Of a stretch of 64,000 nucleotides of DNA, positions 5,554-30,319 are shown one piece after another. A program made the translations under genes and the position numbers. Within the stretch, counting starts at the first letter, position 1, and each line of letters starts with the position of its first letter. Below the pieces are notes generated by a model. It did not search any database. It worked only from the letters and a program-made list of their open reading frames with translations, and was not told the DNA's origin. Location of the stretch: sequence record KU521356.1; one strand, 5' to 3'.

Positions 5554-7734
<2,181 letters not shown>

Positions 7735-7754: not shown

Positions 7755-10445
<2,691 letters not shown>

Positions 10446-10459
10446 TAATTTCTAAACAA

Positions 10460-10491
10460 CATAATGCCCTCCCATTACGGGAGGGCTTATG
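10460..10491. terminator. CATAA-GCCCTCCC palindrome between convergent genes
   Basis: CATAAT-GCCCTCCC-ATTAC-GGGAGGGC-TTATG; no long U-tract. Confidence 0.7.
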
Positions 10492-10494
10492 ACG

Positions 10495-11778
<1,284 letters not shown>

Positions 11779-11875
11779 CTATTAGTCTCCATGGAATGAT
11801 TGGACAATCCTATGTGAATTTCACATCATTACGCTAACAAATTGCGCAATAGCGTTTTATTAAAGGAGGGCAACC

Positions 11876-14191
11876 ATGGCCCACGGTGAAACTGGGTTAT
11901 ATCCATTCGACCCCAATGGAACAAATCCCCAGAACTTTATTAAAGGTGAGCGCCAAACTCTCCAGGTACCAGATGGTGATGATTATTATTTCATTATACC
12001 ATTTGCTGCACCTTTCTTTGTAGATTCATTACGACTATTTAACCCACTGACCAATCAGACTTATGTAGAAGGTGTTGATTACCTTATTGGGCATTGGTTT
12101 ATTGAAGCTATGGAATCGATAGGTAGACCTATCGCTGGATCTATACGTATCATGAAGCGTTCGATAAACGCTATGATTGGTATGGATTATCGTACAATAG
12201 GTGGGCAATGGGGATTTAGTAATCAGCAGATCCTGGCTGAGCTTGCACGCAAACAGTATAACCCCTTGATTCGGTCATGGGGTGCAATTGGTCCATTACC
12301 TGCTTCTTTCCCACCTTTAGAACACAATCAACCTATTGATTCATTAGTAGGTAGTAAAGAGATTCTTGAAGGTATCGAAGGGATTATAGAAGCTATCCGT
12401 GCTGCGGCTGCCGGTACAACTGACCAACATATTCGTGATTATAATAACCCACACAGGGTAACTAAAGCACAAGTTGACTTGTCACTAGTTCCAAACTACG
12501 CAATGGCAAGTGATCAACAGCATTTAGATGCTAATCGTAATGATCTATTTACGAACCCACGTGGTACATTAGCATTAGTTAATAAGTTTGCCGTAAATCC
12601 GCTTAATGCCCACATAGCGGCTAGGGGTAACGTACACGGTCTAACAGCAGCTGATATTAATTTAGGTAATGTTCCTAACTACCCAGCTGCAACACCAACT
12701 ACTGCGGTAGACGTAACTAATGATTCGGTATTATTAACACCTTATACTGCATCTATTCTCTATAGTCAGATTGGTGATGCTTCTAGAATTAATGAACTAG
12801 AAGAGAAACTTAATCAACATATTAGTAATGAAAATAACCCACACGTTGTAACTGCCGACCAGGTTAATGCATATACTAAAACACAAGTTGATCAACTACT
12901 GGCAGGACTAGGTGGTGGTGATGCTTCTACCTTTGGTGGATTAACACCTGAGCAATGGAAAGATGAATTCCCATCATTCGGTGATATTGAAAGGATGGCA
13001 GCCGGCTATAACGCTAACTGGGATGATGTACAATTAAAGATAGATACATTACCAGTTATTGTGGATGATACTAGTGAATATGACCGAATGGAATTAATTC
13101 AAGGTGTCACGGCAGGTTTCCATGCTTATGCTGGATTTAATAGTTGGTGGGATTGTACAATTGTCAGAGATGACTGTGTAGTTCATCCTAAATCGCCAGC
13201 TAACCCTTATGCTGTTATACCAGAGCGTTTAGGATATGCTCAGGAATCCTGGGTATCTCACCGATATGGTCAGTATTGGGTAGAGAATGGTGTAGCCAAG
13301 TCAGCATGTATCGATGAAACTAAAGTCGATGAGATGATACCAATTCCAGTAGAATGGACTGCACCTATAGATGGAAATATTCCTTCAAGTATCTGGGCGA
13401 ATAAAACATCTCTGTATATGTTAACAGGTAAGTTCATCTTTAGTTCAACAGGTGAATCAGCAATCTTTGAGCACCAAGATCTTTATCGTTGTGTTAAAGG
13501 TGGCACATCTGAACTATTAGTACCTGCTGCTAATAAACCATGGGCTTTATTTACCAATACTGAAGACACCTATCCTGGTGAAATGACAGTTGTTGTAAAC
13601 ATAGGTCCAGCTAGCAGTGCTGACTATGTATATACAGCTTATGGTATCCCAAGCTTCATTAGTGCTTTTAATGATTTTGTTAACAACACAATTAAACCAT
13701 TGAATCATGTTATTGATTCAATGTCAATTGGTTGCACCCACATCATCATGCATTCAATAGATCCATTAGTTGCTCCTGAAGATTATACATCTGAATCTAG
13801 TAAAGTACATGTCATGGAAATCATCCGCAATGGTAATGATACATCCTTTATGGTTATCTCGCCATTATGGTTTGATGGACGTGGTAACGATGTAACTGCT
13901 AATGTAAATAGTAACCCAATTGGTGGTGTATCAGGATTGTACACACATTACACAGTGATGTATGGTGATGGCCAAATCGCTTTCTTCGGAAATAACGATA
14001 ATGGACAATGTGACGTAGATGACCATGCTGGACCATATATTCAATTGGCAGCAGGGCATAATTTCACTGTGACAGTAAATACTTTGAATCAAGTCATGTT
14101 CTGGGGAGATTCACCTGATAACTCCTTATTATGGAATGGCAGGGGTACACGTGTGAAACATATTGAACCAACTCCACCCACTGGTCCATAA
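11876..14191 (+). CDS. Tail fibre/baseplate-periphery protein with C-terminal beta-propeller (gp131 equivalent)
   Basis: 771 aa, matching the recalled gp131 size. N-terminal YPFDPNG domain is shared with gp133-135; three H-x5-N(P/V)H fibre repeats; RCC1-like blades at the C-terminus (FFGNNDNGQ, LAAGHNFTV). Confidence 0.85.
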   Translation: MAHGETGLYPFDPNGTNPQNFIKGERQTLQVPDGDDYYFIIPFAAPFFVDSLRLFNPLTNQTYVEGVDYLIGHWFIEAMESIGRPIAGSIRIMKRSINAMIGMDYRTIGGQWGFSNQQILAELARKQYNPLIRSWGAIGPLPASFPPLEHNQPIDSLVGSKEILEGIEGIIEAIRAAAAGTTDQHIRDYNNPHRVTKAQVDLSLVPNYAMASDQQHLDANRNDLFTNPRGTLALVNKFAVNPLNAHIAARGNVHGLTAADINLGNVPNYPAATPTTAVDVTNDSVLLTPYTASILYSQIGDASRINELEEKLNQHISNENNPHVVTADQVNAYTKTQVDQLLAGLGGGDASTFGGLTPEQWKDEFPSFGDIERMAAGYNANWDDVQLKIDTLPVIVDDTSEYDRMELIQGVTAGFHAYAGFNSWWDCTIVRDDCVVHPKSPANPYAVIPERLGYAQESWVSHRYGQYWVENGVAKSACIDETKVDEMIPIPVEWTAPIDGNIPSSIWANKTSLYMLTGKFIFSSTGESAIFEHQDLYRCVKGGTSELLVPAANKPWALFTNTEDTYPGEMTVVVNIGPASSADYVYTAYGIPSFISAFNDFVNNTIKPLNHVIDSMSIGCTHIIMHSIDPLVAPEDYTSESSKVHVMEIIRNGNDTSFMVISPLWFDGRGNDVTANVNSNPIGGVSGLYTHYTVMYGDGQIAFFGNNDNGQCDVDDHAGPYIQLAAGHNFTVTVNTLNQVMFWGDSPDNSLLWNGRGTRVKHIEPTPPTGP

Positions 14192-14203
14192 GAGGATTTA
14201 AAA

Positions 14204-14536
14204 ATGGCAGAAGTTACACGTCAAGAGATGGATGCTCAAATAAATGCTTCTATTAGTAATCAAGGCTTATTTACTAAGGCAGTCCTTAATAAATTCATAG
14301 CCGTTATTAATAGGATCAATGGGCATATTGCAGCTAGAGGTAACCCACATAATCTGCAACCATCGGATATTGGTCTTGGTAATGTGGCTAACTATCGTCC
14401 AGCTACTAAGAAGCGTGCACAAGAAGGTTTCAATAACACTACGTACATGACTCCTAAACGGACAGATGATTATAATCGAGTGCACATATACGGTCCACTT
14501 GCGAAATTATTTAATGACGCAGCAGACCGTCTATAA
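14204..14536 (+). CDS. Short gp131-family paralogue (gp132 equivalent)
   Basis: 110 aa with RBS GAGGA; one HIAARGNPH...GLGNVANY repeat. Confidence 0.8.
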   Translation: MAEVTRQEMDAQINASISNQGLFTKAVLNKFIAVINRINGHIAARGNPHNLQPSDIGLGNVANYRPATKKRAQEGFNNTTYMTPKRTDDYNRVHIYGPLAKLFNDAADRL

Positions 14537-14549
14537 ACATCTGACCCGG

Positions 14550-14585
14550 CATAAGAGACACAGCCAAAAGCTGTGTCTCTTTTTG
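14550..14585 (+). terminator. Intrinsic terminator after gp132
   Basis: AGAGACACAGC-CAAAA-GCTGTGTCTCT then TTTT; preceded by CATA. Confidence 0.8.
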
Positions 14586-14610
14586 CTGTTTCAGTTAAAA
14601 GGTATTTCTT

Positions 14611-15999
14611 ATGTATAATCCTATTTTACAATTACCATTTGATCCATTAGGTACAAATCCAGATTGTTTCATTGGTAGCGAGCCTCATACTCTAGTTCAG
14701 TATCAGGGATTCGACTATAGAATCATCAAGTTATATCATGGTGGATTCTATACAAAAGGGTTAGAAGTTTATGATGGTAAATATAATCGTTTAGTTAAAG
14801 ATATTGATTATATTGTTACTTATTATCACAAAGATGCTAGTGCGTATGTCGGTCAAGAAATATGTTCAGCAATTGTTTTCTTAAAAACACCTAGTACACC
14901 AATAGTGTATACTTCAGCTCACATGGTAGGCGGTGATCTAGCGTTTAGTTTCACAGTTATCGACGATTATATTAACTGGTGGAAAACAAATGGTAAGCCA
15001 AAGCCAAAAGATCTCGACTACACTGGTAACGAACCATATTGGAAAGACGGTGAGTTAGTTGGCGAACGATGGCATCTTGATACGTATCAGCCTTATAATA
15101 ACGAGATGGAGTGGATAACACAGGCACTCATGGCTGGTGATACAAGCGGTGAAGATGAATACCGTAGTAAAGTTAAAGAGATTTATGATGAGTTCTTAAA
15201 GAAATTTAATGATCGCCTAGAAAAACATATTCAAGATAAAGCTAATCCACACAAGATTACCCCAACTAATGTTGAACTAGGTTTAGTTAATAACTTTCCA
15301 TTGGCTACTCCAGCCATTGCTCAACTAGGTCAATCTAATGCACATTATCTAACACCGCAGTTAGCATATGGCGTATTAGATGAAATAGCTATAAAACCAC
15401 TTAATGCCCACATAGCTCGCCGTGATAATCCACATAAAGTCAAAAATACGCATGTACAGTCGTATTTGAAAAGTGATTTTGATTCACGAATTACTGGTAA
15501 ATATTTAAAGACTGATACAGTAGCTAATACTAATATGGTTTATTATAAACCTAAAGGGCAACCAACTGCTACTTTAATGGGTTATAGCGATCTTATTTGG
15601 TGGATGCGTAAGAACTTTGACACAGACGTGAACTTTACAGCTGGCGATGGCCAGAGTAATGTCATCAATATAAATCGGATTGGTTCCGGGGCAATGGGAC
15701 AATGGAAAGCACCACTCCGTGGGAATGGTATTTTTACACACTTTGATCAATTAGCCACAGAGTATTCATATCCGGTTAAGTTAAAGTTTTATGCACTAGG
15801 ATTACAACCATCCGTGCAAGCAGCATTAGATTTCTGTAGAACTAACTTCACTAATCCAGATGCATGGCCTATTGGATCTACTGTATTCTTCACTATTAAA
15901 GAACAGAAAATCCAGGCAGCTGGTAACGGATTGATTTTCGTTGATTATACTCCTAACTACGTGTGTTTCCGTTCACAAGGTGGCTGGGTAATTCCATAA
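14611..15999 (+). CDS. gp131-family tail fibre protein (gp133 equivalent)
   Basis: 462 aa; LPFDPLG N-terminus, two NPH repeats, C-terminal WPIGS domain shared with gp134/135. Confidence 0.85.
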   Translation: MYNPILQLPFDPLGTNPDCFIGSEPHTLVQYQGFDYRIIKLYHGGFYTKGLEVYDGKYNRLVKDIDYIVTYYHKDASAYVGQEICSAIVFLKTPSTPIVYTSAHMVGGDLAFSFTVIDDYINWWKTNGKPKPKDLDYTGNEPYWKDGELVGERWHLDTYQPYNNEMEWITQALMAGDTSGEDEYRSKVKEIYDEFLKKFNDRLEKHIQDKANPHKITPTNVELGLVNNFPLATPAIAQLGQSNAHYLTPQLAYGVLDEIAIKPLNAHIARRDNPHKVKNTHVQSYLKSDFDSRITGKYLKTDTVANTNMVYYKPKGQPTATLMGYSDLIWWMRKNFDTDVNFTAGDGQSNVININRIGSGAMGQWKAPLRGNGIFTHFDQLATEYSYPVKLKFYALGLQPSVQAALDFCRTNFTNPDAWPIGSTVFFTIKEQKIQAAGNGLIFVDYTPNYVCFRSQGGWVIP

Positions 16000-16010
16000 G
16001 GATAGTTTAG

Positions 16011-17384
16011 ATGAATCCATTACTTTTACCTCTTCCATTTGATGAAACTGGAGAGAGTTATAGTAACCGAACAAAGGGTGAATACCATTCACTAGCAAAA
16101 CAGAAAGGATTCCCCTATCGCATCATCGTGATGGATAAGGGTTACTTTTACACTAAAGGAATGGTTATCAGAGATGGTAGGCAGAATGAGTTAAATCCAG
16201 AAATGGATTATCAGTGTACTGGTATTAATCCAGAAGTAATCGAGAAGACTGGACTTGAAGCGTGTTCAGTAATTGTTATTACAAAACAAGATGTCCACGA
16301 GGATATTTACATTGATGCTCAGATGTGCGGTGGTATATACTGTAACCTTTCCCCTTCCATATCTGAGCATGCTAACGCTCTTTTAAATAATACCCGTAAA
16401 CCACATTGGTCTAATATTTTAGATATTCCTGACCAATTTAAACCTAATGGACATATGCATGCCTATTGGGAACTTTATGGTTTTACGCCTAGAGTTGTTA
16501 AGTTAAAAGAAATAACTGACTTATTAAAGAAAAGCTCATCAGACTCATATGACTCCATTTTAGATGAGTTTAAATATCAGTTAAGTCTAATAGAAGCTGA
16601 TCTTAATACAATTGAAGCACGACTTACTACACACATCAATGATACCACCACTAACCCACACCAGACACGTAAAGGGCAAGTGGCATTAGGTAATGTTTAT
16701 AATGCTGGCATTGCAACTGAAACACAAGCCAAACAGCCAAATGGCGCTATCATGAATGTCTATGCTACGCCATGGTCAATGAAGTTATCAGTTGATACCA
16801 ATTATACAGTTCAATATCTGGCACACGTTAATGATGTCACCACTAACCCACACAGGGTAACGGCTGAACAATTAAATACGTATACTGTTACTCAAGCTAA
16901 TATTTTACTAAATCAAAAATTAGATAAAGGTAAAACAGCCAATACGTCTAAACTTTTATTTGGTCAAGATGTTTATAGCATGGGTGAAACAGTACGTGCT
17001 AAAATGCCTTTAAGTGTATTGACGACTGGTCGACTAGCACCTGGTAGGATTGGTAATTCAGCTACCTGGCCAGGCCGTGATTGGACATTGATGCCTAATG
17101 GTCAATGGACTCATTTCGGTTTTATATTTAATCGCTTCCAAAAAACAGGAACGATGGTCCACTGGAATAACACCAACTTTAAGTCTATTCAAGAAGCAAT
17201 TGCTTTCCATAACACATACTTCTCAGATCCTGAACAATGGTGGCCTGGTTCGTTAGCTATTTGCCATTACGATCAAGAATTCGTTATTGGACATGGCAAT
17301 GGTACAACAGCTACTTCCTATAGGAATACTCTATTCCTACGTAAAGTTGGATCAACGTGGACTAATATAGGGGAACCGGCATAA
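16011..17384 (+). CDS. gp131-family tail fibre protein (gp134 equivalent)
   Basis: 457 aa; LPFDETG N-terminus, two NPH repeats. Confidence 0.85.
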   Translation: MNPLLLPLPFDETGESYSNRTKGEYHSLAKQKGFPYRIIVMDKGYFYTKGMVIRDGRQNELNPEMDYQCTGINPEVIEKTGLEACSVIVITKQDVHEDIYIDAQMCGGIYCNLSPSISEHANALLNNTRKPHWSNILDIPDQFKPNGHMHAYWELYGFTPRVVKLKEITDLLKKSSSDSYDSILDEFKYQLSLIEADLNTIEARLTTHINDTTTNPHQTRKGQVALGNVYNAGIATETQAKQPNGAIMNVYATPWSMKLSVDTNYTVQYLAHVNDVTTNPHRVTAEQLNTYTVTQANILLNQKLDKGKTANTSKLLFGQDVYSMGETVRAKMPLSVLTTGRLAPGRIGNSATWPGRDWTLMPNGQWTHFGFIFNRFQKTGTMVHWNNTNFKSIQEAIAFHNTYFSDPEQWWPGSLAICHYDQEFVIGHGNGTTATSYRNTLFLRKVGSTWTNIGEPA

Positions 17385-18775
17385 TGATTACTTTTTTACC
17401 ATTAGATCTAAAAGCTAAATTAGCATCTAATTACATTGTAGATGAGGATCACACACTTATTCAAGTCAATAATAAAACACATCGCGTACTTATGTGTACA
17501 CATGGTGGTTTTTATACTAAGGACTTTAATCTACGTGATAAGAAGACTGGTTTATCTTTAAACAAAGATCAATATAAAACAACCTATCTTTATTCACAGT
17601 TATCTGAAATGACTGGCTTAGAAGTAATGGGTATTGTTGTAGTAACTGATCCTAATGTTAGTCCTAATGTCCAAGTTACATATAGAGCAGTTGGTGGTTT
17701 CTTTAGTATTTCAGCATTAGAACTTAAAGCTGTTTTTGATAAACTTGAATTAGATGAATTAAGTTTCACTTGGGATGATATTATTGGTAAACCCGATGCA
17801 TATCCGCCTGCACCTCACGGCCATGAATATTGGCAGATTTATGGCACAGATACAATGGTAACTGAATTAAACCGAATAGCACACGCTTATCGGGTCGGTA
17901 GAAGTGCCATGGATAATGCTGCCGATGATTATTATAAAGTTTATCTCACTGATGCAAAAACCGCTGTGGACGATTATAGAGATCGAGTTACAGCACACTT
18001 AACTGATTATAATAATCCGCATGCTGATGATCGATTCAAGTTAATTCCACCGCTTGATAAGATATCCAACTGGGGTTTTGCTACTGAAGCTGAGTCAGTT
18101 AATAGAAACGTAAATAATAAATACATGCCAATTGGTGGTATTTATCGTATTCTTAATATTGATACGTTGGCTAAACTTGCAGCACATATTAAAAACTTTA
18201 ATAACCCACATGCTGTCACAGCTGACCAAGTTGGATCATATACCAAACCAGTGATGGATTCTAAAATAACTCCATTATTAGGTATTAATGAACAAGCTGC
18301 TAATGCGACCACTATTGGTGCTACTACTAATAGTCAGGGTTATCCAGTTACTGGAACAGGTAAGGTATATCAGAATTTCTGGAATGATGTTCGAAAAGAT
18401 ATTCCAGCTGAAGAAGTAACTAGTGGCGTATTTAAATGGAATGCATTAGGTAAAGGTAATGCATCAATATTAAATGACCCTGAGAGATATTATCTAGCGA
18501 GCGATGGTACTTGGCAAGACTGGGTTGAAGCTTTTAAAGAGTGGAGCAAAGATAAGATTAAAGCCATTACCTTAGGTCAGGTAAATAGTGAAGCAGAAGC
18601 ATTAAACACGTTAAATACGATGTTTACAGATAATACCAAATATCCTGAAGGCACTTACGCTGTTGTAGGTGTTAGAACTAATACCCCCTTTGAAGCCTAT
18701 TATTACCAGCAATATGTAGCAGTTAGAAATAATGGTACATGGCGTTGGATGATTCGAGCTGGAGCACTTGTATAA
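17384..18775 (+). CDS. gp131-family tail fibre protein (gp135 equivalent)
   Basis: 463 aa; TAATG stop/start overlap with gp134; FLPLDLK N-terminus, two NPH repeats. Confidence 0.85.
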   Translation: MITFLPLDLKAKLASNYIVDEDHTLIQVNNKTHRVLMCTHGGFYTKDFNLRDKKTGLSLNKDQYKTTYLYSQLSEMTGLEVMGIVVVTDPNVSPNVQVTYRAVGGFFSISALELKAVFDKLELDELSFTWDDIIGKPDAYPPAPHGHEYWQIYGTDTMVTELNRIAHAYRVGRSAMDNAADDYYKVYLTDAKTAVDDYRDRVTAHLTDYNNPHADDRFKLIPPLDKISNWGFATEAESVNRNVNNKYMPIGGIYRILNIDTLAKLAAHIKNFNNPHAVTADQVGSYTKPVMDSKITPLLGINEQAANATTIGATTNSQGYPVTGTGKVYQNFWNDVRKDIPAEEVTSGVFKWNALGKGNASILNDPERYYLASDGTWQDWVEAFKEWSKDKIKAITLGQVNSEAEALNTLNTMFTDNTKYPEGTYAVVGVRTNTPFEAYYYQQYVAVRNNGTWRWMIRAGALV

Positions 18776-19377
18776 TGAATAATCCGTTATCACTCCAAGA
18801 ACTATCTTTAGCTACTGCGCCTACTGAAGATAAAGTAAAAGTACTATTAATGTTTAACCGTACTTCTGAGGTATTCCTACAAAGCGTAGGCTATCTACCT
18901 TTAGATGCATTCGATGCTAAGTCACGTGAGCACACCATTTTTGTTGAAGCCGAAATGGGTACTTATGATGTAGTCGTAAGTAATACACCTGGTAAACAAC
19001 CTACACTTTCCGATTGGAAGATTGTTCCTAAAGAAGAAGCGCCACAAGTGATTACTGAAGATCACTTAAATAGTAAAGTGGCCTACAAAATTACTGAACG
19101 CTATCCAGTGACTGAGCAAATTAATATCCTTGCACGTGCAATTAAACAGCTAGCTGAAAAATATGGTCAAGAGTTAGATGAACTAGAAGAAATGCTTGAT
19201 TATATTGATCTTGTTAAACGAACTAATCGCGCGCATAAGGAGGCCCTAATTGAGAGCCCAGACGTTATCTATAAATCCAGGGAAGATCTCGACGCTGAGA
19301 AAGCACATCGATATGCAGGTGGCCTGCATGAGCTTATCGGCCCACGAAAGATCGACCAGGGACGTGTTTTCAGCTGA
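18775..19377 (+). CDS. Hypothetical protein, possible fibre assembly/chaperone (gp136 equivalent)
   Basis: Start moved from 18739 to the ATG at 18775, which overlaps the gp135 TAA and has GGAG at 18761. Chaperone role is inferred from position only. Confidence 0.7.
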   Translation: MNNPLSLQELSLATAPTEDKVKVLLMFNRTSEVFLQSVGYLPLDAFDAKSREHTIFVEAEMGTYDVVVSNTPGKQPTLSDWKIVPKEEAPQVITEDHLNSKVAYKITERYPVTEQINILARAIKQLAEKYGQELDELEEMLDYIDLVKRTNRAHKEALIESPDVIYKSREDLDAEKAHRYAGGLHELIGPRKIDQGRVFS

Positions 19378-19810
19378 ATTTGCAGCTGACCTTGTATCTT
19401 ATCTGGATACACTGGGTGATTCCTGGTGGTTTAATCGGAAAAAAATTAATAGTATCCCAACCAAAGGTATCACTGAATGTGATTATTGGTTTTTAGGTCA
19501 TAACCAAATGCCAGTGGAATTACGGGAATTACTATTTCATATTGCACCTAAGGTAGAAGGTGCTTGGTTAGGCGAAGTTCTAATCAACCGATATGAAATT
19601 GGTACAGGTATGCCTGAACACATCGACCAAGCTGTTTATCGTTACAACATGGTTATTGCATTAAATGACAATGGCGATGGTATAACGATCAATGGTGAGT
19701 TTTATCAGGATGTACCAGGTAGGGCTACTATTTTTCCAATCCGTTCAGAGCCACATGAAGTCCCTCCAGTTAAAAATAAAAGATACGTCCTTATATATCT
19801 CTACGAGTAG
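19328..19810 (+). CDS. 2OG-Fe(II) dioxygenase-fold protein (gp137 equivalent)
   Basis: NRYEIGTGMPEHID...PHEVPPV...RYVLIY gives the HxD...H iron triad and the 2OG-binding Arg. The start is uncertain (19328 has AGGT upstream; track gives 19250). Confidence 0.75.
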   Translation: MSLSAHERSTRDVFSAEFAADLVSYLDTLGDSWWFNRKKINSIPTKGITECDYWFLGHNQMPVELRELLFHIAPKVEGAWLGEVLINRYEIGTGMPEHIDQAVYRYNMVIALNDNGDGITINGEFYQDVPGRATIFPIRSEPHEVPPVKNKRYVLIYLYE

Positions 19811-19818
19811 GGTACAAC

Positions 19819-20307
19819 ATGGCAATTAAACTTAAGACTCTATCTAAGGCAGAACTAAAAACATTAACAAAGCTTAAAGGCGAAGTTTCATTTAGAGACT
19901 CATATGGCCACCGTATGCGAGTTGGCACTAATGGCCTTAAAGCATGTAGTGTTTATAATACTTCAAAATGGTTTAATTGGACTGCTAAACAGCGTAAAGA
20001 AATTAAGCCAATTTTAGGCGAAGAACTATTTAACAAAGCACTGCAAGTATGGTTTTTAGATTTCCCCAAAATAGATGGATTTCTAGATGAGATGAATTAT
20101 TGGGTAGATAAACCCGAGTCCGGTACTATTCTTGCTTGGAATATTGGACCTGATGCTAAGTTCATTTTAGATGGTGAGGAACTATTAATTGGAAAAGGTG
20201 AAGGATTAGTATTCCATCTATCCCAATTACATGAAGTAAAACGTTCCCATAATGGACAATCATGGATCTGTGTAATGGTACGTGGTGCTCCTGAAAAATT
20301 TGCTTAA
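19819..20307 (+). CDS. Degenerate double-stranded beta-helix/oxygenase-like protein (gp138 equivalent)
   Basis: 162 aa; the C-terminal half parallels gp137 (GEGLVFHLSQLHEVKR...WICVMV) but has no HxD. Confidence 0.6.
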   Translation: MAIKLKTLSKAELKTLTKLKGEVSFRDSYGHRMRVGTNGLKACSVYNTSKWFNWTAKQRKEIKPILGEELFNKALQVWFLDFPKIDGFLDEMNYWVDKPESGTILAWNIGPDAKFILDGEELLIGKGEGLVFHLSQLHEVKRSHNGQSWICVMVRGAPEKFA

Positions 20308-20310
20308 CAG

Positions 20311-20336
20311 CATAAATCCCCTCCATGTGGAGGGGA
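20311..20336 (+). terminator. Hairpin after gp138
   Basis: TAA-CAG-CATAAA-TCCCCTCC-ATGT-GGAGGGGA. Confidence 0.65.
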
Positions 20337-21301: not shown

Positions 21302-21865
21302 ATGCTTAAGCTTCCAGCGAGTGATGAGCCATTTCGGGTACTAGCATTAGACCCTGGTTCACAAAACCTCGGCATAGCTATTCTGGAAGATAAGTTGGAT
21401 GGAAGTAATAAGGTGGTACGTAATGCATTTACCTGCCACCTTAAAGATACAAATCCGGCATATGCTGCCATCTCCGAGGTTCATGGTAGTAGATTTACTA
21501 GAATGCAGCAAATGAGTGATGTGGTACTAAATATACTACATACTGAAAAACCACATGCAGTTATTGTAGAGTCTAACTATCTTGGTAAGTTTGCCCAAAG
21601 CTTCGCTGTACTTGTAGAATGTGTGACCTATGTACATAGAGCATTATACGAGTATGATAGATTTATACCTTTATACATGATTGATCCTACTACAGTTAAA
21701 ATCAATGCGGGTATGAAAAAAGTAAAGGGTACTACTAAAGATGATGTTAAAGAAGCAATGCGTTCTCGTACTGACATCACATGGAACATCGATATAGATA
21801 GTCTAGATGACCACTCTATGGATGCTTGTGCGATAGCTTACTACTACCTTACTAGGATTGTTTAA
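21302..21865 (+). CDS. ruvC: RuvC-like Holliday junction resolvase (gp140 equivalent)
   Basis: RVLALDPGSQNLG (catalytic D), VIVE (E), K in TTVK, DDHSMDACAIA (D...D). Confidence 0.85.
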   Translation: MLKLPASDEPFRVLALDPGSQNLGIAILEDKLDGSNKVVRNAFTCHLKDTNPAYAAISEVHGSRFTRMQQMSDVVLNILHTEKPHAVIVESNYLGKFAQSFAVLVECVTYVHRALYEYDRFIPLYMIDPTTVKINAGMKKVKGTTKDDVKEAMRSRTDITWNIDIDSLDDHSMDACAIAYYYLTRIV

Positions 21866-24668: not shown

Positions 24669-27038
24669 ATGGCAAATGCTACAGACAAAGGCAAGATCAG
24701 TCAACTGCCGGATCTAGCTACTCTTAACGATAGCGAGTATATTGAATTAATTCATACCGATGCAGCTGGTCAAGTCGATAACTATAAGTTTCTGCTGTCA
24801 AAACTACAGACTGGAGCACCCGGTCTTAGTGCGTACGAGATTGCCGTTAAAAATGGTTTCCAGGGAACTGAAACCGAATGGCTTGATTCGCTTAAAGGTA
24901 AATCTTCTTATCAAATCGCAGTCGATCTAGGTTTCGTTGGTACTGAAGAAGAGTTTATAGCATCCCTTAAAGGTGATGCTGGTAAGAGTGCATATGAAGT
25001 AGCTGTGGAAAACGGTTTCCAAGGTACTGAACAGGAATGGTTAACATCACTGCATGCAACCATGACTGCTGAACTACTCCAGTCGCTCTTAAATCAACAA
25101 GGTTACACAGTTAAAGATGTACTGCGTGTAACTGGCAAGAATGGTGGATTATCATCCAACGCTGCTTTCCATAACTTTGCTTTCCTGTTTGATAAGCGTC
25201 TAAATCAAGACGACTTAACTGCTGGTGATAAAATACCTCAGCGTATGATGGAACAAGGTCGTATGGAAGCAGAAGGTTATTCTTATCTAAAGAACGCTTC
25301 TGCGCCCACTACGCAAGGTGCATTACCCGAATTACCTGAGTCTGAAATTCGTATTTATGACAATGGTGAATTCCAGATTGGTAGTTTAACTGATTACATT
25401 GCATTCAAGAATGACGGTAATATCCGTATTGTTGAAGGCGTTGATGAAACGACCGTTGATCTTAAGAACCTTCCTAAAAATGAAGGTATTAGTGGCGGTG
25501 TATTCGTCAAAGATGTACAAGCAACTGATCCCAGTCAGAACGTAGGTAGTATTGTGCGTACCCCTGATGGACACAGCGTACAGTCATGCCTATCGACCAC
25601 TAGTAATGTTCGGGTTATCGTTGATGCAATAACTGGACATTCTAGTTATGTACCTAGTGTTAAAATCAATAACGTAGATGCAGTTGTAACTCCTGGCGTT
25701 AATCCACCCATGTGGATTGCTACCGCCGATATTGATCTTGGTGCACCTACTACTGAAGGTTATGCTGATATTGTTGTAGAACACGCCGATGGGGCTAAAT
25801 TCACTACTAAGGTATTAGCCGATACTCCCGCTAATATTACCAGTGCTGTATTTACTGGCGGTTATCCGTTAGGTCAAACAGAACTTAAAGAAGATGACCT
25901 TGTTGCAATTAAAGTTGTTACTGATGAAAATATAGTAGCATACGAAATTGCTGACTTTGGTGCACTGAAAGAAAGTAGTGGCACTGTTGCACCTACTAAA
26001 GAACTAGAGGTTACTGGTCTTTACGTAGCTGATCGTGGTAATACTACTAAGGCATATGGTTTCCGTGTACGTGTTCAGAAATCAACTGGGTCATGGTCAG
26101 AATGGTTTACTTCCAGTGATGCTGGTTCCGAAGATAAAATTAACACCATGCAGTTAAACGATCTTCGCCCAGTTGTTAATATTGGTCAAGTAACTTATCC
26201 GTCTGGTCAAAGTGCTATTAAAGTAGGTGAAACTGCCACTGTAGCCAATACAGTATCTAATGCTGATAGTGTGGTTTATTCCTCACCAAATGATCAGCTC
26301 ACTATAACCAGTGCAAATGAAGCAGAAATTGCTAAGGTAGTTACTTATAAGTCTGGTACTTATAACGACAGCACTAATAACCTATTAATTACTGCTAAAC
26401 GTGCAGCTAATGGTAGTGTAGCTACGGCTACTGCTGTTGTAGCTATTGCAAATGCGGTACCTACTGCGACGGTTACCTACCCTGCTGCTCGCCTTCGTTC
26501 AGGTGGTAACTTTGGAACCCAAGTACAAAGTCATGTCATTACTTTAACCTCTACTCAGAAACTAAGTGCAGCTCCGGCCATGAATGCGCCTGGCGGTAAG
26601 TGGGCTACTGAGGATTGGAAATCTGACGCCACTGGTAAGGTATGGACACGTGCGTTACTAGTACATGACGATGATCCTAAAGGAACCTACGATTTTAACA
26701 GTGTGGTTCTAAAAGGTTTAGCTGGTGTTGAAGCTAATAGTGTAAATGGTGGTACTTACGTACTAGGTGGATTTGTATTCCGCACTCTAAGTGTGGCTGC
26801 TTGGCCGAACCGTGAAACTGATATTGGTACTGAAGTAACCAATACTGGTAAACTACGTTGCAGTAACCTATCTAAAGGTTCTACTGGTAGCTTAAACTTC
26901 ACTTATAAGGCAGATGATGCGAATCAAGTTGACACCTACACCATCAAGGATGGCAATAAGTGGTATAACTGTGACTCAGCAAACGCTGTATCCAATACCA
27001 CTGGACTGATGAAAATCGAACTTGAGGAAGTAGTATAA
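24669..27038 (+). CDS. Tail/fibre structural protein (gp145 equivalent)
   Basis: 789 aa with RBS AAGGA; three G-x-S-(A/S)-Y-x-(I/V)-A-V-x-x-GF-x-GTE-x-E repeats, then T/V/A-rich beta domains. Confidence 0.8.
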   Translation: MANATDKGKISQLPDLATLNDSEYIELIHTDAAGQVDNYKFLLSKLQTGAPGLSAYEIAVKNGFQGTETEWLDSLKGKSSYQIAVDLGFVGTEEEFIASLKGDAGKSAYEVAVENGFQGTEQEWLTSLHATMTAELLQSLLNQQGYTVKDVLRVTGKNGGLSSNAAFHNFAFLFDKRLNQDDLTAGDKIPQRMMEQGRMEAEGYSYLKNASAPTTQGALPELPESEIRIYDNGEFQIGSLTDYIAFKNDGNIRIVEGVDETTVDLKNLPKNEGISGGVFVKDVQATDPSQNVGSIVRTPDGHSVQSCLSTTSNVRVIVDAITGHSSYVPSVKINNVDAVVTPGVNPPMWIATADIDLGAPTTEGYADIVVEHADGAKFTTKVLADTPANITSAVFTGGYPLGQTELKEDDLVAIKVVTDENIVAYEIADFGALKESSGTVAPTKELEVTGLYVADRGNTTKAYGFRVRVQKSTGSWSEWFTSSDAGSEDKINTMQLNDLRPVVNIGQVTYPSGQSAIKVGETATVANTVSNADSVVYSSPNDQLTITSANEAEIAKVVTYKSGTYNDSTNNLLITAKRAANGSVATATAVVAIANAVPTATVTYPAARLRSGGNFGTQVQSHVITLTSTQKLSAAPAMNAPGGKWATEDWKSDATGKVWTRALLVHDDDPKGTYDFNSVVLKGLAGVEANSVNGGTYVLGGFVFRTLSVAAWPNRETDIGTEVTNTGKLRCSNLSKGSTGSLNFTYKADDANQVDTYTIKDGNKWYNCDSANAVSNTTGLMKIELEEVV

Positions 27039-30000
27039 TGGCTTCTGCATTTGAAGATTATGTAAACGGGGAACTCCCCAAACGGGTATCATCAATTGAT
27101 GAACCCACTTCTGTAGTTAATGGACACATCCCGGTTTCTACCGGGGTGGGTCTTAATACCACTTTCGTTGATCCTGTTACTATACCTGGATTAAAGGGTG
27201 AAGATGGTCAGCCGGGTAAAGATGGCGATCAAGGTCCCCCTGGCCCAGTTGGTCCGGCTATTAACATTATCGCTAATGTTGATCTAGCAACATTCGAACA
27301 AGATATTAAACCATTAGATACGCATAATGTCGGTGATGCTTGGTTCGTTGAAGATCGGCTATGGGTATGGGAATCACCGCTAGGTAATGAAGATCCCCCT
27401 GTAAAAGGTCGTTGGGTTGAAACAGGTTCACTTCGTGGTCCAGATGGTACTGGTCTGGTTATCCGTGGTCGTTGGCCTAATAACTTAGAATTACCTAAGA
27501 CTGAAAGTAATAAACCTGGAGATGCTTACTCATGGAATAATCAACTCTGGGCGTGGATGCTTATCTCAGGTAATAATCCGCCAGAGAATCCAACTATTGA
27601 TGACTATGATTGGTTCCCAGTTACACCACAGGGTGAACGTGGACCTGAGGGCCCTGAGGGTCCGCAAGGTAAAGATGGTGAAATTGGTCCTGAAGGTCCT
27701 CAGGGTGAACCAGCAATGCCGTTTACCATTAAGGATTCACTACCATCACCAGCTGATTTACCTGATCCATCTGTAGCTAAAGAATCAGAAGCATACTTAG
27801 TTACTATGGAAGCTGGTAAACCAGAACATCTATTCATCTTTGTAAAAGGGGCATGGTCAGACCTAGGTACTTTCCAAGGCCCTGAGGGCCCACAAGGTAA
27901 ACCAGGTAATACAGGTGATCCGGGTCCCGATGGTAAACAAGGTGAACCTGGTCCACAAGGTCGTAACTTAGAAGTAGTTAAAGCAGTTGAAACTGCTGAT
28001 GATCTATTAACCACCACTGGTGTAGAACAATACCAAGGTGTTTCAGTACGTTCCACCAATACGGTTTATGTACTGACTGGCCAAGATCCGACTGTTGATA
28101 TCTCATGGACAGCCATGGGTTCATTCCGTGGCCCGCAGGGCCCTGAAGGTCCGCAAGGTGAAGATGGCGAACAAGGTCTACCTGGTGAACCAGGGGCACA
28201 AGGTAAATCGGCTTTCCAAGTAGCATTGGACAATGGCTTCACTGGTACTGAGGGTGAATGGTTAATCAGTCTACATGGTAAGAACGTAGTTATTACTGGT
28301 GCTGTTGCCAATGAGGCAGCCCTGCCGGCAGATGCTCCTGATCAGGCAGCGTACTTCACACAAGACACATCTACCTTATTTGTTAAGATAGATGGTAATT
28401 GGGTAAATAGTGGTACACATCGAGGTCCTAAAGGTGAAGATGGCGCACCTGGTAAAGACGGTGATCAGGGACCAGAAGGACCCGAGGGACCAGAAGGCCC
28501 ACAAGGTCCCGCTGGTGAACCTATCCAGATCATCGCAGCGATTGACACTCCTGAAGATACCCCACCAGAAGCACTTGCCGATAACCAATGGAAAGCATAT
28601 ACTGTTAAGTCCACGGGCGAAGTATTTGTTAACATGGACGGTAGTCGCTGGACTAGCATTGGTATTATGGCAGGTCCGCAAGGTAAACCGGGTGAAGGTT
28701 TAAACATTAAAGGTGTTTTAACCGATGCTTCACAACTACCAAAGAAAGACACTGATCCTGACTTAGTAACTGGTGATTCATACTGGGTTGAAACTAACGA
28801 AGGTACAATGCTCTATACTTACCAAGGTCAGGAAATTGATGGCTATATCGGCCCAATTAATCTAAATGGTGAGCAGGGTATCCAGGGTGTCGAAGGCCCA
28901 CAAGGTCCTGAAGGTAAACAAGGTGGTGGTCTATTAATTATCTATGTTGGTGATGATGCTGGTAAACCAGTAGCATCTGCTGATAACGTAGGTAAAGGTA
29001 TTGCCATTCGCACCAATACTGAAGGACAAGTAGAAGTATTTGTAAGTATCGATACTGAAGGTACATTTACTTGGGAAAGCCTAGGTGTCTTAGCCATGGG
29101 TCCGCAGGGTCCTGAAGGTCCTGAGGGCAAACAAGGTGTTCCAGGTATCCCTGGTAAAACCGGTCAGAAAGGTGAACGTGGATCCTCTTGGGTAATTCTA
29201 CCTGAAGGTCAAACTGCACCCACTTCTATCGATGGTAATCGTGGTGACTGGTGTATCGACAAAACTGGTACCGTTTGGTATAAAGATGCTAACTGGGTTG
29301 TATTCTACAAATTAATGTCAGTTCCAGTTAGTGAAGTCGATCCAGAAGATGTCGATAAGAAAATGGTTCGGTACAAACTCGGTTGGACTGAACTACCTGT
29401 TGATGAGGTGGTAGATGCTGAAGTAGGTGTCTTCTATGGTCGCCGTAAAGCAACCGCTGACGGGGCTGTTGAATGGACTGCTATTGAATTACCAACACCT
29501 GCCATTGATGCTGTACCTAGTCCAGTTGTTAATGCACAATACGTTCGTAAAGGTATTGCAGGGGGTGAAACTGAATGGGCTACCATTACATTCCCAGAAA
29601 TTCCTTCAGATGTAGTACGCGATACTGCACAAGCTACTAAGCCTCAAGGTCGTGTAGCTGGTAACTGGGTTGATGTAGCACCTCTGCAAACCGATGATAC
29701 TCTAATGGGTATGCAAAATGGTGAATGGGTAGCTGTACCAGCCGCAGTTATTGGTGAAGTACCTAGTGAAGGTGCTAATGGCACTAACTATGTACGTGAG
29801 AAAACAGCTAGTGGTTCTAAATGGACACCTGTAACTATTATAGTTGATCAAGCTGATGCTACTAGTGGACAACTATTCCTACGTAATGCTGCGGCTAAAT
29901 CATGGACTCTATTCCAAGGTCCGAATAATGATGTAACCGCTGATGGTGATTGGCTACGTAGTCGTACTGGTACTAATATTACTTGGAAGAAGCTAGATAA

Positions 30001-30319
30001 ATCATTCGATGCATATAGACTAAAATCAAGTACATTCACTGGTACAGCTCTGACTATAACACCTGCTAACCAGCAGTGCTATAAAGTTCAAACTGCTGCT
30101 AACCAGACTATCACAATAGAGAATGGTCCAGCTGATCGCATGATCACAGCTGTTCTCGTATTGCTTGGTAAGGTAGCTATGCCAACACTTTCTAGTGCAG
30201 TGTTACAATGGAACAATGGTACTCCAGTAATAGTAGATGACCTAGGTGATACTAAAACAGTTCTTACCCTCTTATGGGATGGTACTAACTGGATAGTTTC
30301 CAAAGGTGCTGTTATTTAA
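27038..30319 (+). CDS. Collagen-like tail fibre protein (gp146 equivalent)
   Basis: 1093 aa; several (Gly-X-Y)n blocks (GPEGPEGPQG) separated by globular knobs; C-terminal Trp-containing repeats; TAATG overlap with gp145. Confidence 0.9.
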   Translation: MASAFEDYVNGELPKRVSSIDEPTSVVNGHIPVSTGVGLNTTFVDPVTIPGLKGEDGQPGKDGDQGPPGPVGPAINIIANVDLATFEQDIKPLDTHNVGDAWFVEDRLWVWESPLGNEDPPVKGRWVETGSLRGPDGTGLVIRGRWPNNLELPKTESNKPGDAYSWNNQLWAWMLISGNNPPENPTIDDYDWFPVTPQGERGPEGPEGPQGKDGEIGPEGPQGEPAMPFTIKDSLPSPADLPDPSVAKESEAYLVTMEAGKPEHLFIFVKGAWSDLGTFQGPEGPQGKPGNTGDPGPDGKQGEPGPQGRNLEVVKAVETADDLLTTTGVEQYQGVSVRSTNTVYVLTGQDPTVDISWTAMGSFRGPQGPEGPQGEDGEQGLPGEPGAQGKSAFQVALDNGFTGTEGEWLISLHGKNVVITGAVANEAALPADAPDQAAYFTQDTSTLFVKIDGNWVNSGTHRGPKGEDGAPGKDGDQGPEGPEGPEGPQGPAGEPIQIIAAIDTPEDTPPEALADNQWKAYTVKSTGEVFVNMDGSRWTSIGIMAGPQGKPGEGLNIKGVLTDASQLPKKDTDPDLVTGDSYWVETNEGTMLYTYQGQEIDGYIGPINLNGEQGIQGVEGPQGPEGKQGGGLLIIYVGDDAGKPVASADNVGKGIAIRTNTEGQVEVFVSIDTEGTFTWESLGVLAMGPQGPEGPEGKQGVPGIPGKTGQKGERGSSWVILPEGQTAPTSIDGNRGDWCIDKTGTVWYKDANWVVFYKLMSVPVSEVDPEDVDKKMVRYKLGWTELPVDEVVDAEVGVFYGRRKATADGAVEWTAIELPTPAIDAVPSPVVNAQYVRKGIAGGETEWATITFPEIPSDVVRDTAQATKPQGRVAGNWVDVAPLQTDDTLMGMQNGEWVAVPAAVIGEVPSEGANGTNYVREKTASGSKWTPVTIIVDQADATSGQLFLRNAAAKSWTLFQGPNNDVTADGDWLRSRTGTNITWKKLDKSFDAYRLKSSTFTGTALTITPANQQCYKVQTAANQTITIENGPADRMITAVLVLLGKVAMPTLSSAVLQWNNGTPVIVDDLGDTKTVLTLLWDGTNWIVSKGAVI

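Follow-up and report, generated by a model that had tools for sequence, protein, structure and literature searches.

The window analysed here is a stretch of 64,000 nucleotides (nt) from sequence record KU521356.1; adding 124000 to a window coordinate gives the record coordinate. Our subject is a set of three adjacent genes in its baseplate and fibre gene block, gp136, gp137 and gp138, referred to below as the trio or the cassette, and the 3 kb around them are 100% identical to Pseudomonas phage KTN4 (KU521356.1), of species phiKZ. Gene numbers are those of phiKZ, the KTN4 equivalents being gp171 (gp136), gp172 (gp137) and gp173 (gp138). All three open reading frames (ORFs) are annotated in published records, and in the literature we found no paper on the function of any of them in phiKZ, none on the biochemistry of gp137 and none in which phage fibres are tied to an enzyme of dioxygenase or prolyl hydroxylase type. 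On the sequence evidence set out below, gp136-gp137-gp138 is a mobile three-gene cassette that moves between unrelated phages, and it appears to do so together with one fibre-tip domain.

Gene layout and distribution of the cassette

By annotation the block includes the paralogous fibre genes gp131-135, the outer baseplate gene gp139, the endolysin gene gp144 and genes for further tail proteins, gp145 and gp146. The original prediction had the trio following gp133-135 with overlapping or near-abutting starts, and the gene coordinates bear this out: the gp135 stop and the gp136 ATG have 1 nt in common at 18775, the overlap of gp136 and gp137 is 14 nt if gp137 starts at the GTG at 19364 used in the KTN4 record or 50 nt if it starts at the ATG at 19328, and gp138 starts 8 nt past the gp137 stop. 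We prefer the ATG at 19328, because the resulting protein of 160 amino acids (aa) fits the phiKZ record (483 bp) and most relatives. An AGGTGG-like ribosome-binding site stands in front of this ATG.

The hairpin said to end the gene block is also there, but a few bases from the position given for it (20311). Its stem of 8 bp includes six G-C pairs and lies 10 nt past the gp138 stop, and it folds with -18.7 kcal/mol (z = -3.95), none of 200 shuffled sequences folding equally well. The gp138 homologue is trailed by a comparable hairpin in phages Noxifer and Astolliot as well, and none was found after it in phiPA3, 201phi2-1, Psa21 or the prophage discussed below. The spacer between gp138 and gp139 is 95 nt, and according to the paper on transposon insertion sequencing (TnSeq) of phiKZ, which cites the mapping, transcription starts anew upstream of orf139.

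Among isolated phages we find homologues of gp136 in 71 records and of gp137 and gp138 in 72 records each, all of them Pseudomonas phages. Within the chimalliviruses the trio always comes after paralogues of gp133-135 (phiPA3, 201phi2-1, Noxifer, Psa21 and 19 IMG/VR contigs). It is also present in five lineages foreign to that group. In the T4-like Otagovirus its neighbours are gp11 (baseplate) on one side and gp13 (neck) on the other, in a P2/Mu-like prophage in a bacterial chromosome nothing but the trio separates the tail-fibre gene from the sheath gene, and in three metagenomic phages it is found beside tail-collar fibre, sheath or baseplate-wedge genes. In all six lineages the trio is located in the fibre/baseplate module with constant gene order and overlapping or abutting starts, and the gp136-like and gp137-like genes overlap at every locus. 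This context strengthens the earlier proposal that two oxygenase-fold genes are coupled to the fibre genes.

The foreign proteins are only about 21% to 35% identical in pairwise comparison to those of the window. Profiles built from chimalliviruses nevertheless find each of the three partners in every one of the five foreign lineages, with E-values from 5e-74 to 2e-15, and homologues of gp136 precede the oxygenase gene in each of the six lineages (profile E 5e-45 to 9e-22). A scan of viral contigs with the chimallivirus alignment returned chimalliviruses only, and a scan of a genome collection with a single protein gave no match. One genome-collection match looks spurious, as a long ORF occupies the complementary strand there. 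For gp138 the word-indexed search found near-identical copies only, and the wider alignment of its relatives was seeded from phage records.

Table 1. Features of the gp133-138 gene block and gp146, in window coordinates
Feature	Position	Strand	Description
gp133	14611..15999	+	Fibre protein ending in the tip domain that travels with the cassette (last ~100 aa, 15697-15996; annotation and profile)
gp134	16011..17384	+	Fibre paralogue; tip domain at 17082-17381
gp135	17384..18775	+	Fibre paralogue immediately 5' of the cassette; tip domain at 18473-18772
gp136	18775..19377	+	First cassette gene, 200 aa; PHROG 13209, an entry without a function
gp137	19328..19810	+	Predicted minimal oxygenase dependent on Fe(II) and 2-oxoglutarate (2OG), 160 aa, or 148 aa from the GTG at 19364
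gp138	19819..20307	+	Pseudo-oxygenase, 162 aa, paralogue of gp137
Hairpin	20317..20336	+	GC-rich, closes the gp133-138 gene block; terminator-like, with a weak + strand U tract
gp146	27038..30319	+	Collagen-like fibre, ~7 kb from the trio

The fibre-tip domain exchanged with the trio

The fibre proteins gp133, gp134 and gp135 and their chimallivirus homologues have a C-terminal domain of about 60-100 aa in common. We trained a profile on 15 of these C-termini from five chimalliviruses and searched it against 772 ORFs of at least 70 aa from 15 loci that had not been used in training. Only 13 ORFs matched at E<0.01, and all 13 end directly upstream of a gp136-like gene; the next best ORF has E = 1.2. 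The matches are a protein of ~177 aa at ten Otagovirus-type loci (E 9e-8 to 3e-3), fibres of 394 aa (9e-6) and 369 aa (9e-4), and a chimallivirus-type fibre of 469 aa (3e-18). When 25 of the C-termini are aligned there is a Pro in 19, a Gly two positions on in 24, a Gly-flanked Asn in 22 and a near-terminal Trp in 24. As a negative control we used the fibre loci of RP12, an Elvirus, PCH45 and an SPN3US relative, in which the tip domain and the trio are both absent.

The N-termini of the ORFs upstream of the trio belong to different families (P2 gpH-type, tail-collar fibre and phiKZ gp131-type). The N-terminal domain of gp135 is found in 254 phage records covering many hosts, nearly always as a match to the first ~60% of gp135 only, and there are just 58 records in which the match spans at least 80% of the protein. 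A tblastn search with one tip domain stayed within phages of the phiKZ species, and we take the domain to be too divergent for BLAST for that reason. The tip-domain profile found no relative in the PDB.

The original prediction had named His or Asn in the Asn-Pro-His ('NPH') repeats of the fibres as possible sites of hydroxylation, and here it is not supported, since these repeats are not common to the foreign fibres upstream of the trio. In the window gp131, gp133, gp134 and gp135 (11876-18775) have two His...Asp...Asn-Pro-His copies each, with invariant residues, and there are none in the foreign trio-adjacent fibres. We considered His-x-His or NPH repeats as a common denominator of the upstream fibres and rejected both, as other lineages do not share them. 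The Pro-Pro...His-x-His repeat is a common fibre motif, and among the upstream fibres it is present in gp135 and the P2-type fibre only. The latter, 5' of the prophage trio (positions 6393-7370 of locus L012), has four tandem copies; gp135 has one (aa 127-154), and degenerate forms occur in gp131 (aa 122-159) and gp134 (blastp E = 5e-5).

The range of bacteria open to attachment by a phage is set by its fibre tips, and to our knowledge the helpers that fold them are known for a few model phages only. In these, the tip and its assembly chaperone are exchanged as a unit, the pairs being H-G of P2, S-U of Mu, stf-tfa of lambda and gp37-gp38/gp57A of T4. Our cassette resembles such tip-chaperone pairs because the attachment domain varies while the distal domain and the helpers are swapped jointly: the trio lies directly 3' of the fibre gene and is swapped with its C-terminal domain, the N-terminus being specific to each lineage, and the prophage trio occupies the fibre-to-sheath interval. 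It differs from the P2, Mu, lambda and T4 pairs in having three proteins rather than one, in lacking any Pfam resemblance to Caudo_TAP, and in that two of its proteins have an oxygenase fold, one with an intact catalytic site. The first protein of the trio, gp136, is helical, with weak matches of coiled-coil type only, in its C-terminal half. We found no relative of it in Pfam or the PDB, and the check for homology to fibre-assembly proteins gave only a weak match to a PHROG 'tail assembly chaperone' (E = 0.033).

The oxygenase-fold proteins gp137 and gp138

The AlphaFold model of gp137, made with 21 relatives, has a predicted local distance difference test score (pLDDT) of 94.9. It has a double-stranded beta-helix fold which Foldseek matches at probability 1.0 to many solved 2OG oxygenases, with template modelling (TM) scores of 0.55-0.71. 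In Pfam gp137 matches 2OG-FeII_Oxy_3 (PF13640) with E = 1.7e-5 and 26.1 bits, 0.9 bit short of the cut-off of 27, and the 160-aa form scores 25.9 bits against that cut-off (E about 2e-5). Searches of the PDB with the single sequences of gp137 and gp138 gave only noise.

The His-x-Asp...His iron triad and the basic 2OG-binding residue are both present in gp137. Numbered from the GTG at 19364, the residues are H86, D88, H131 and R140, invariant in 21 close relatives, and in the wider family they are kept in 59, 61, 60 and 63 of 63 members respectively, in agreement with the intact HxD...H...R set read earlier from the single sequence. On this pattern the catalytic set is complete and under selection, and we predict from the model and alignments that gp137 is a minimal Fe(II)/2OG oxygenase. 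The family is small, with 73 clusters among 1.84 billion representatives and members of ~150-190 residues. A distant relative (E = 4e-6 in a deep search) at 1481-1978 of locus L035 is solitary among bacterial DUF1120 and PEGA genes, with no partners like gp136 or gp138, and could represent an outgroup of cellular origin.

No match to Pfam was found for gp138. Its model, made with 28 relatives, has a pLDDT of 89.4 and contains the beta-helix core, and the best Foldseek matches in the PDB are ALKBH7, the prolyl hydroxylase of chlorovirus PBCV-1, Pseudomonas PPHD, Ofd2 and AlkB, with ALKBH5 near the top. Profile-profile alignment (hhalign) of the gp138 and gp137 families gave 80% probability and E = 1.4e-5 over 138 columns, almost the full length. 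The nearest viral structures to the gp137 model include the gp138 homologue from phiPA3 (TM 0.72, root mean square deviation 3.3 Å), and one foreign gp138-like protein also matches the gp137 profile. Active-site geometry was judged from alignments for both proteins. All members of the gp138 family examined (28 relatives and five foreign lineages) lack the proximal His as well as the Arg that would follow the distal one, the proximal His position being taken by a hydrophobic residue or an invariant Trp according to the alignment, while the distal His (H138) is invariant and is the sole catalytic residue kept. With neither a full iron triad nor the 2OG-binding Arg, gp138 is filed here as a pseudo-enzyme and not as an oxygenase. 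Fold model and alignments thus agree with the earlier suggestion of a pseudo-enzyme or partner subunit, and by both gp138 is a catalytically dead, distant paralogue of gp137.

It is less easy to place gp137 among the oxygenases. The Foldseek list for the model is headed by a PiuC-like protein, PHD2, Pseudomonas PPHD, PolD, LH3, the PBCV-1 collagen prolyl hydroxylase and AspH, with AlkB homologues somewhat lower. The prolyl 4-hydroxylase (P4H) of PBCV-1 (PDB 5c5t) ranks 12th with E = 3.8e-5, and PHD2, AspH, LH3 and ABH2 are in the same range. As all the Foldseek E-values are within one order of magnitude, the list does not single out a subfamily. Pfam is equally divided over the 21 diverse relatives, 6 of which match a P4H-type model and 6 the AlkB-type model PF13532 at E<0.01. 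The best PDB matches, PHD2/EGLN1, PPHD and the PiuC-like protein (4bqy, 4iw3 and 3dkq; E about 1e-5, TM 0.58-0.69), have the same arrangement of His-x-Asp, His and Arg as gp137, with the Arg nine residues past the distal His, but there is no subfamily-level sequence similarity between them and gp137. The matched chains are of 180-230 residues, and for this reason gp137 looks like a stripped core.

The PF13532 matches are one ground for thinking of gp137 as an AlkB-like dioxygenase that repairs or modifies phage DNA or RNA and is in the fibre operon only incidentally. ABH2 and ALKBH6 are also among the structural matches of gp137, ALKBH7, AlkB and ALKBH5 lead the list for gp138, and PHROG 2297, which includes the gp137 family, is labelled 'DNA endonuclease'. 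We nevertheless consider this identity very unlikely. The gp137 of the window scores only 13.4 bits on PF13532, for which the cut-off is 31.2, and at 148-160 aa it is shorter than the ~200-aa AlkB chains that it matches. The gene has the same position in the fibre module and the same partners in six lineages, and no DNA-metabolism neighbours. The 'DNA endonuclease' label, which is also in many RefSeq phage records, is unsupported by any search that we ran, and looks like a propagated misannotation as every search gives a 2OG/Fe(II) oxygenase; we suggest that it be corrected.

The matches to PPHD and PHD2 raise a different possibility, that gp137 serves host takeover by hydroxylating a protein of the host, for instance a translation factor, in the way that PPHD acts on EF-Tu. 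These two are among the best structural matches, but gp137 sits in a block of structural genes with a hairpin of its own at the end, temperate and lytic phages that differ in architecture share this context, and the partners gp136 and gp138 are virion-associated, all of which make a host target for gp137 extremely unlikely.

In terms of chemistry, the systems closest to gp137 are protein hydroxylases of the PHD/P4H type and the oxygenases with which giant viruses modify collagen. Other viral oxygenases offer a further comparison. The PBCV-1 P4H (5c5t) and the mimivirus lysyl hydroxylase L230 (6ax7, 9nev) are, like gp137, virus-encoded Fe(II)/2OG oxygenases, and are thought to modify the fibrous proteins of their own viruses. 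They are structural matches with TM 0.54-0.62 but at 11-17% identity, and gp137 is both smaller (148-160 aa) and without collagen-like companions outside the chimalliviruses. After gp137's own family, the nearest viral structural neighbours are '2OG-Fe(II) oxygenase' genes of cyanophages and other phages, and a 2026 paper reports that many phage proteins are structurally similar to human prolyl hydroxylase EGLN3. The gp137 family is distinguished from these other phage oxygenases by its small size, its fixed partner pair and its fixed fibre context.

The PBCV-1 enzyme had also led to the suggestion that gp137, helped by gp138, is a collagen-type P4H acting on the X-Pro-Gly sites of gp146. That gp146 is collagen-like is not in doubt, as 13 X-Pro-Gly sites and seven stretches of Gly-X-Y repeats, each 6-11 triplets long, are present in it. 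Many of the trio-carrying chimallivirus loci encode collagen-like homologues downstream, the PBCV-1 enzyme is among the structural matches of both gp137 and gp138, and the best Pfam model for gp137 is of P4H type. However, the co-occurrence ends with the chimalliviruses: in Otagovirus, the P2-like prophage and the three metagenomic lineages there is no collagen-like ORF in the 7-9 kb flanking the trio. The trio adjoins tips of the gp133-135 type and not gp146, and the viral P4H matches gp137 no better than do PHD2, AspH, LH3 or ABH2. In addition the Pro residues of the gp146 repeats are mostly in the X position, the first after Gly, whereas collagen P4H prefers Pro in the Y position. From the sequences, then, a link between gp146 and the cassette is not supported, and gp146 is a decidedly improbable substrate.

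Virion and transposon data and the role of the cassette

In the 2026 cryo-electron microscopy atlas of phiKZ there are 12 hetero-hexameric fibres with the N-termini of gp131, gp133, gp134 and gp135 at the baseplate, which puts their C-termini in a distal position; the distal parts were too flexible for resolution. The KTN4 paper used sensitive electrospray ionisation tandem mass spectrometry of virions and lists 111 proteins. Its supplement includes gp136 with 6 peptides and 42% coverage and gp138 with 3 peptides and 22% coverage, and gp137 is not listed. Presence on particles of part of the accessory set, gp136 and gp138, is a further likeness to fibre-chaperone pairs.

The phiKZ TnSeq data divide the trio in the same way. 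After filtering, PHIKZ137 retains 2 sites with 577 reads, and no reads remain in PHIKZ133-136, 138 or 139; the raw data have 8 sites and 604 reads in 137, 3 sites and 4 reads in 136, and 1 site and 1 read in 138. Insertions averaged one per 42 bp, and it is thus unlikely that the gaps in 136 (603 bp) and 138 (489 bp) arose by chance. Simple polarity of 136 onto 138 is no explanation, as insertions in 137 are viable. Taking both data sets together we infer that gp136 and gp138 are needed for fitness and are partly particle-associated, and that gp137 is neither. This offers a reading for the transposon data, in which two small genes behave as needed and the enzyme between them does not.

The detection of gp136 and gp138 in purified KTN4 particles would also fit a role for the trio at the host surface, with gp136 and gp138 as adhesins of the tip, or with gp137 acting within the infected cell to oxidise a receptor or a component of the envelope. 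Oxidation of the envelope would alter adsorption of progeny or of competing phages. Cassettes linked to tips often encode adhesins, of which the T2-type gp38 is an example. Among isolated phages the trio is limited to those of Pseudomonas, and gp137 has a weak match (E = 0.047) to the Asp/Asn beta-hydroxylase family, which includes the lipid A hydroxylases. We regard this as improbable, as gp137 is absent from the virion list, and co-transfer with a specific tip is more simply explained as a client-chaperone relation. In addition, reading through the three sequences, with no dedicated prediction, we noticed no membrane segment or signal peptide.

We prefer to see the cassette as serving the tip itself, and since cassette and one tip domain move together between unrelated phages, the cassette probably matures or modifies that tip. 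In more general form, that the trio is a tip-specific accessory module, we hold this with some confidence. If it is combined with a role for the enzyme, such that the trio is an accessory cassette for tips of the gp133-135 type and gp137 oxidises a tip residue, we find the case evenly poised. Hydroxylation of the fibre tip by gp137 is a fair way short of probable but a serious candidate. More doubtful again, and put forward as tentative, is the complete scheme in which receptor-binding tips are enzymatically matured, with gp137 hydroxylating a conserved tip residue and the dead paralogue and helical partner presenting the client.

On our preferred reading gp136 and gp138 would bind the folding or nascent tip as chaperone or adaptor, and part of both would stay on the particle. 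The enzyme, as an oxygenase core stripped of substrate-binding inserts of its own, would make use of the same tip recognition and would oxidise one of the tip's residues, most likely by hydroxylation. The near-invariant Asn in the Gly-Asn-Gly turn and the conserved Pro are candidate targets. The modification may tune stability or binding and not be required for assembly, and a tuning role of this sort would account for the dispensability of gp137 on the laboratory host.

Several observations weigh against our preferred role at the tip. No hydroxylated residue has been seen so far, and the subfamily of gp137 is ambiguous in both structural and Pfam matches. The cryo-electron microscopy atlas names 40 virion proteins without mention of gp136, gp137 or gp138, and in the 201phi2-1 record the three homologues are not marked as detected by mass spectrometry although their flanking neighbours are. 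As 136 and 138 are short genes, their lack of insertions could partly reflect polarity, and the TnSeq authors warn that polar effects exist. The dispensability of gp137 in the laboratory also means that its chemistry is not required for assembly as such. None of 11 members of the gp136 family gave a Caudo_TAP-type assembly protein in Pfam. In two lineages the tip match is weak: that of the P2-type fibre is not significant with the chimallivirus-only profile (E = 1.8), its pattern fitting only by eye, and at locus L010 a 209-aa neighbour reaches only E = 0.01 with a broader tip profile built without that protein.

The findings suggest that very different phages of Pseudomonas and of environmental origin have in common an unrecognised set of helpers, among them an intact oxidising enzyme and its inactive counterpart. 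If the tip is indeed marked by gp137, phage particles would carry a chemical modification not reported before, and there would be both a new system for post-translational modification of virions and a new class of fibre chaperone. The unit that moves between jumbo, T4-like and P2-like phages would then have four parts, namely tip, partner, enzyme and pseudo-enzyme, and one branch of the unexplained phage '2OG-Fe(II) oxygenase' genes would have a function.

Two minor observations concern other genes near fibre or baseplate genes. The Enterobacteria phage SEGD1, an SPN3US relative and a chimallivirus without the trio, has two radical S-adenosylmethionine genes (10325-12440 of locus L049; Pfam E = 2.6e-9 and 9.6e-15) ~3 kb downstream of a gp131-type fibre gene, and these may be another enzyme pair near fibre genes. 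In the window gp140 (21302-21865) is within the baseplate operon, and its homologues in Noxifer and Psa21 are annotated as RuvC Holliday-junction resolvase; the window protein itself has a weak match to RuvC (E = 0.0063), under the cut-off.

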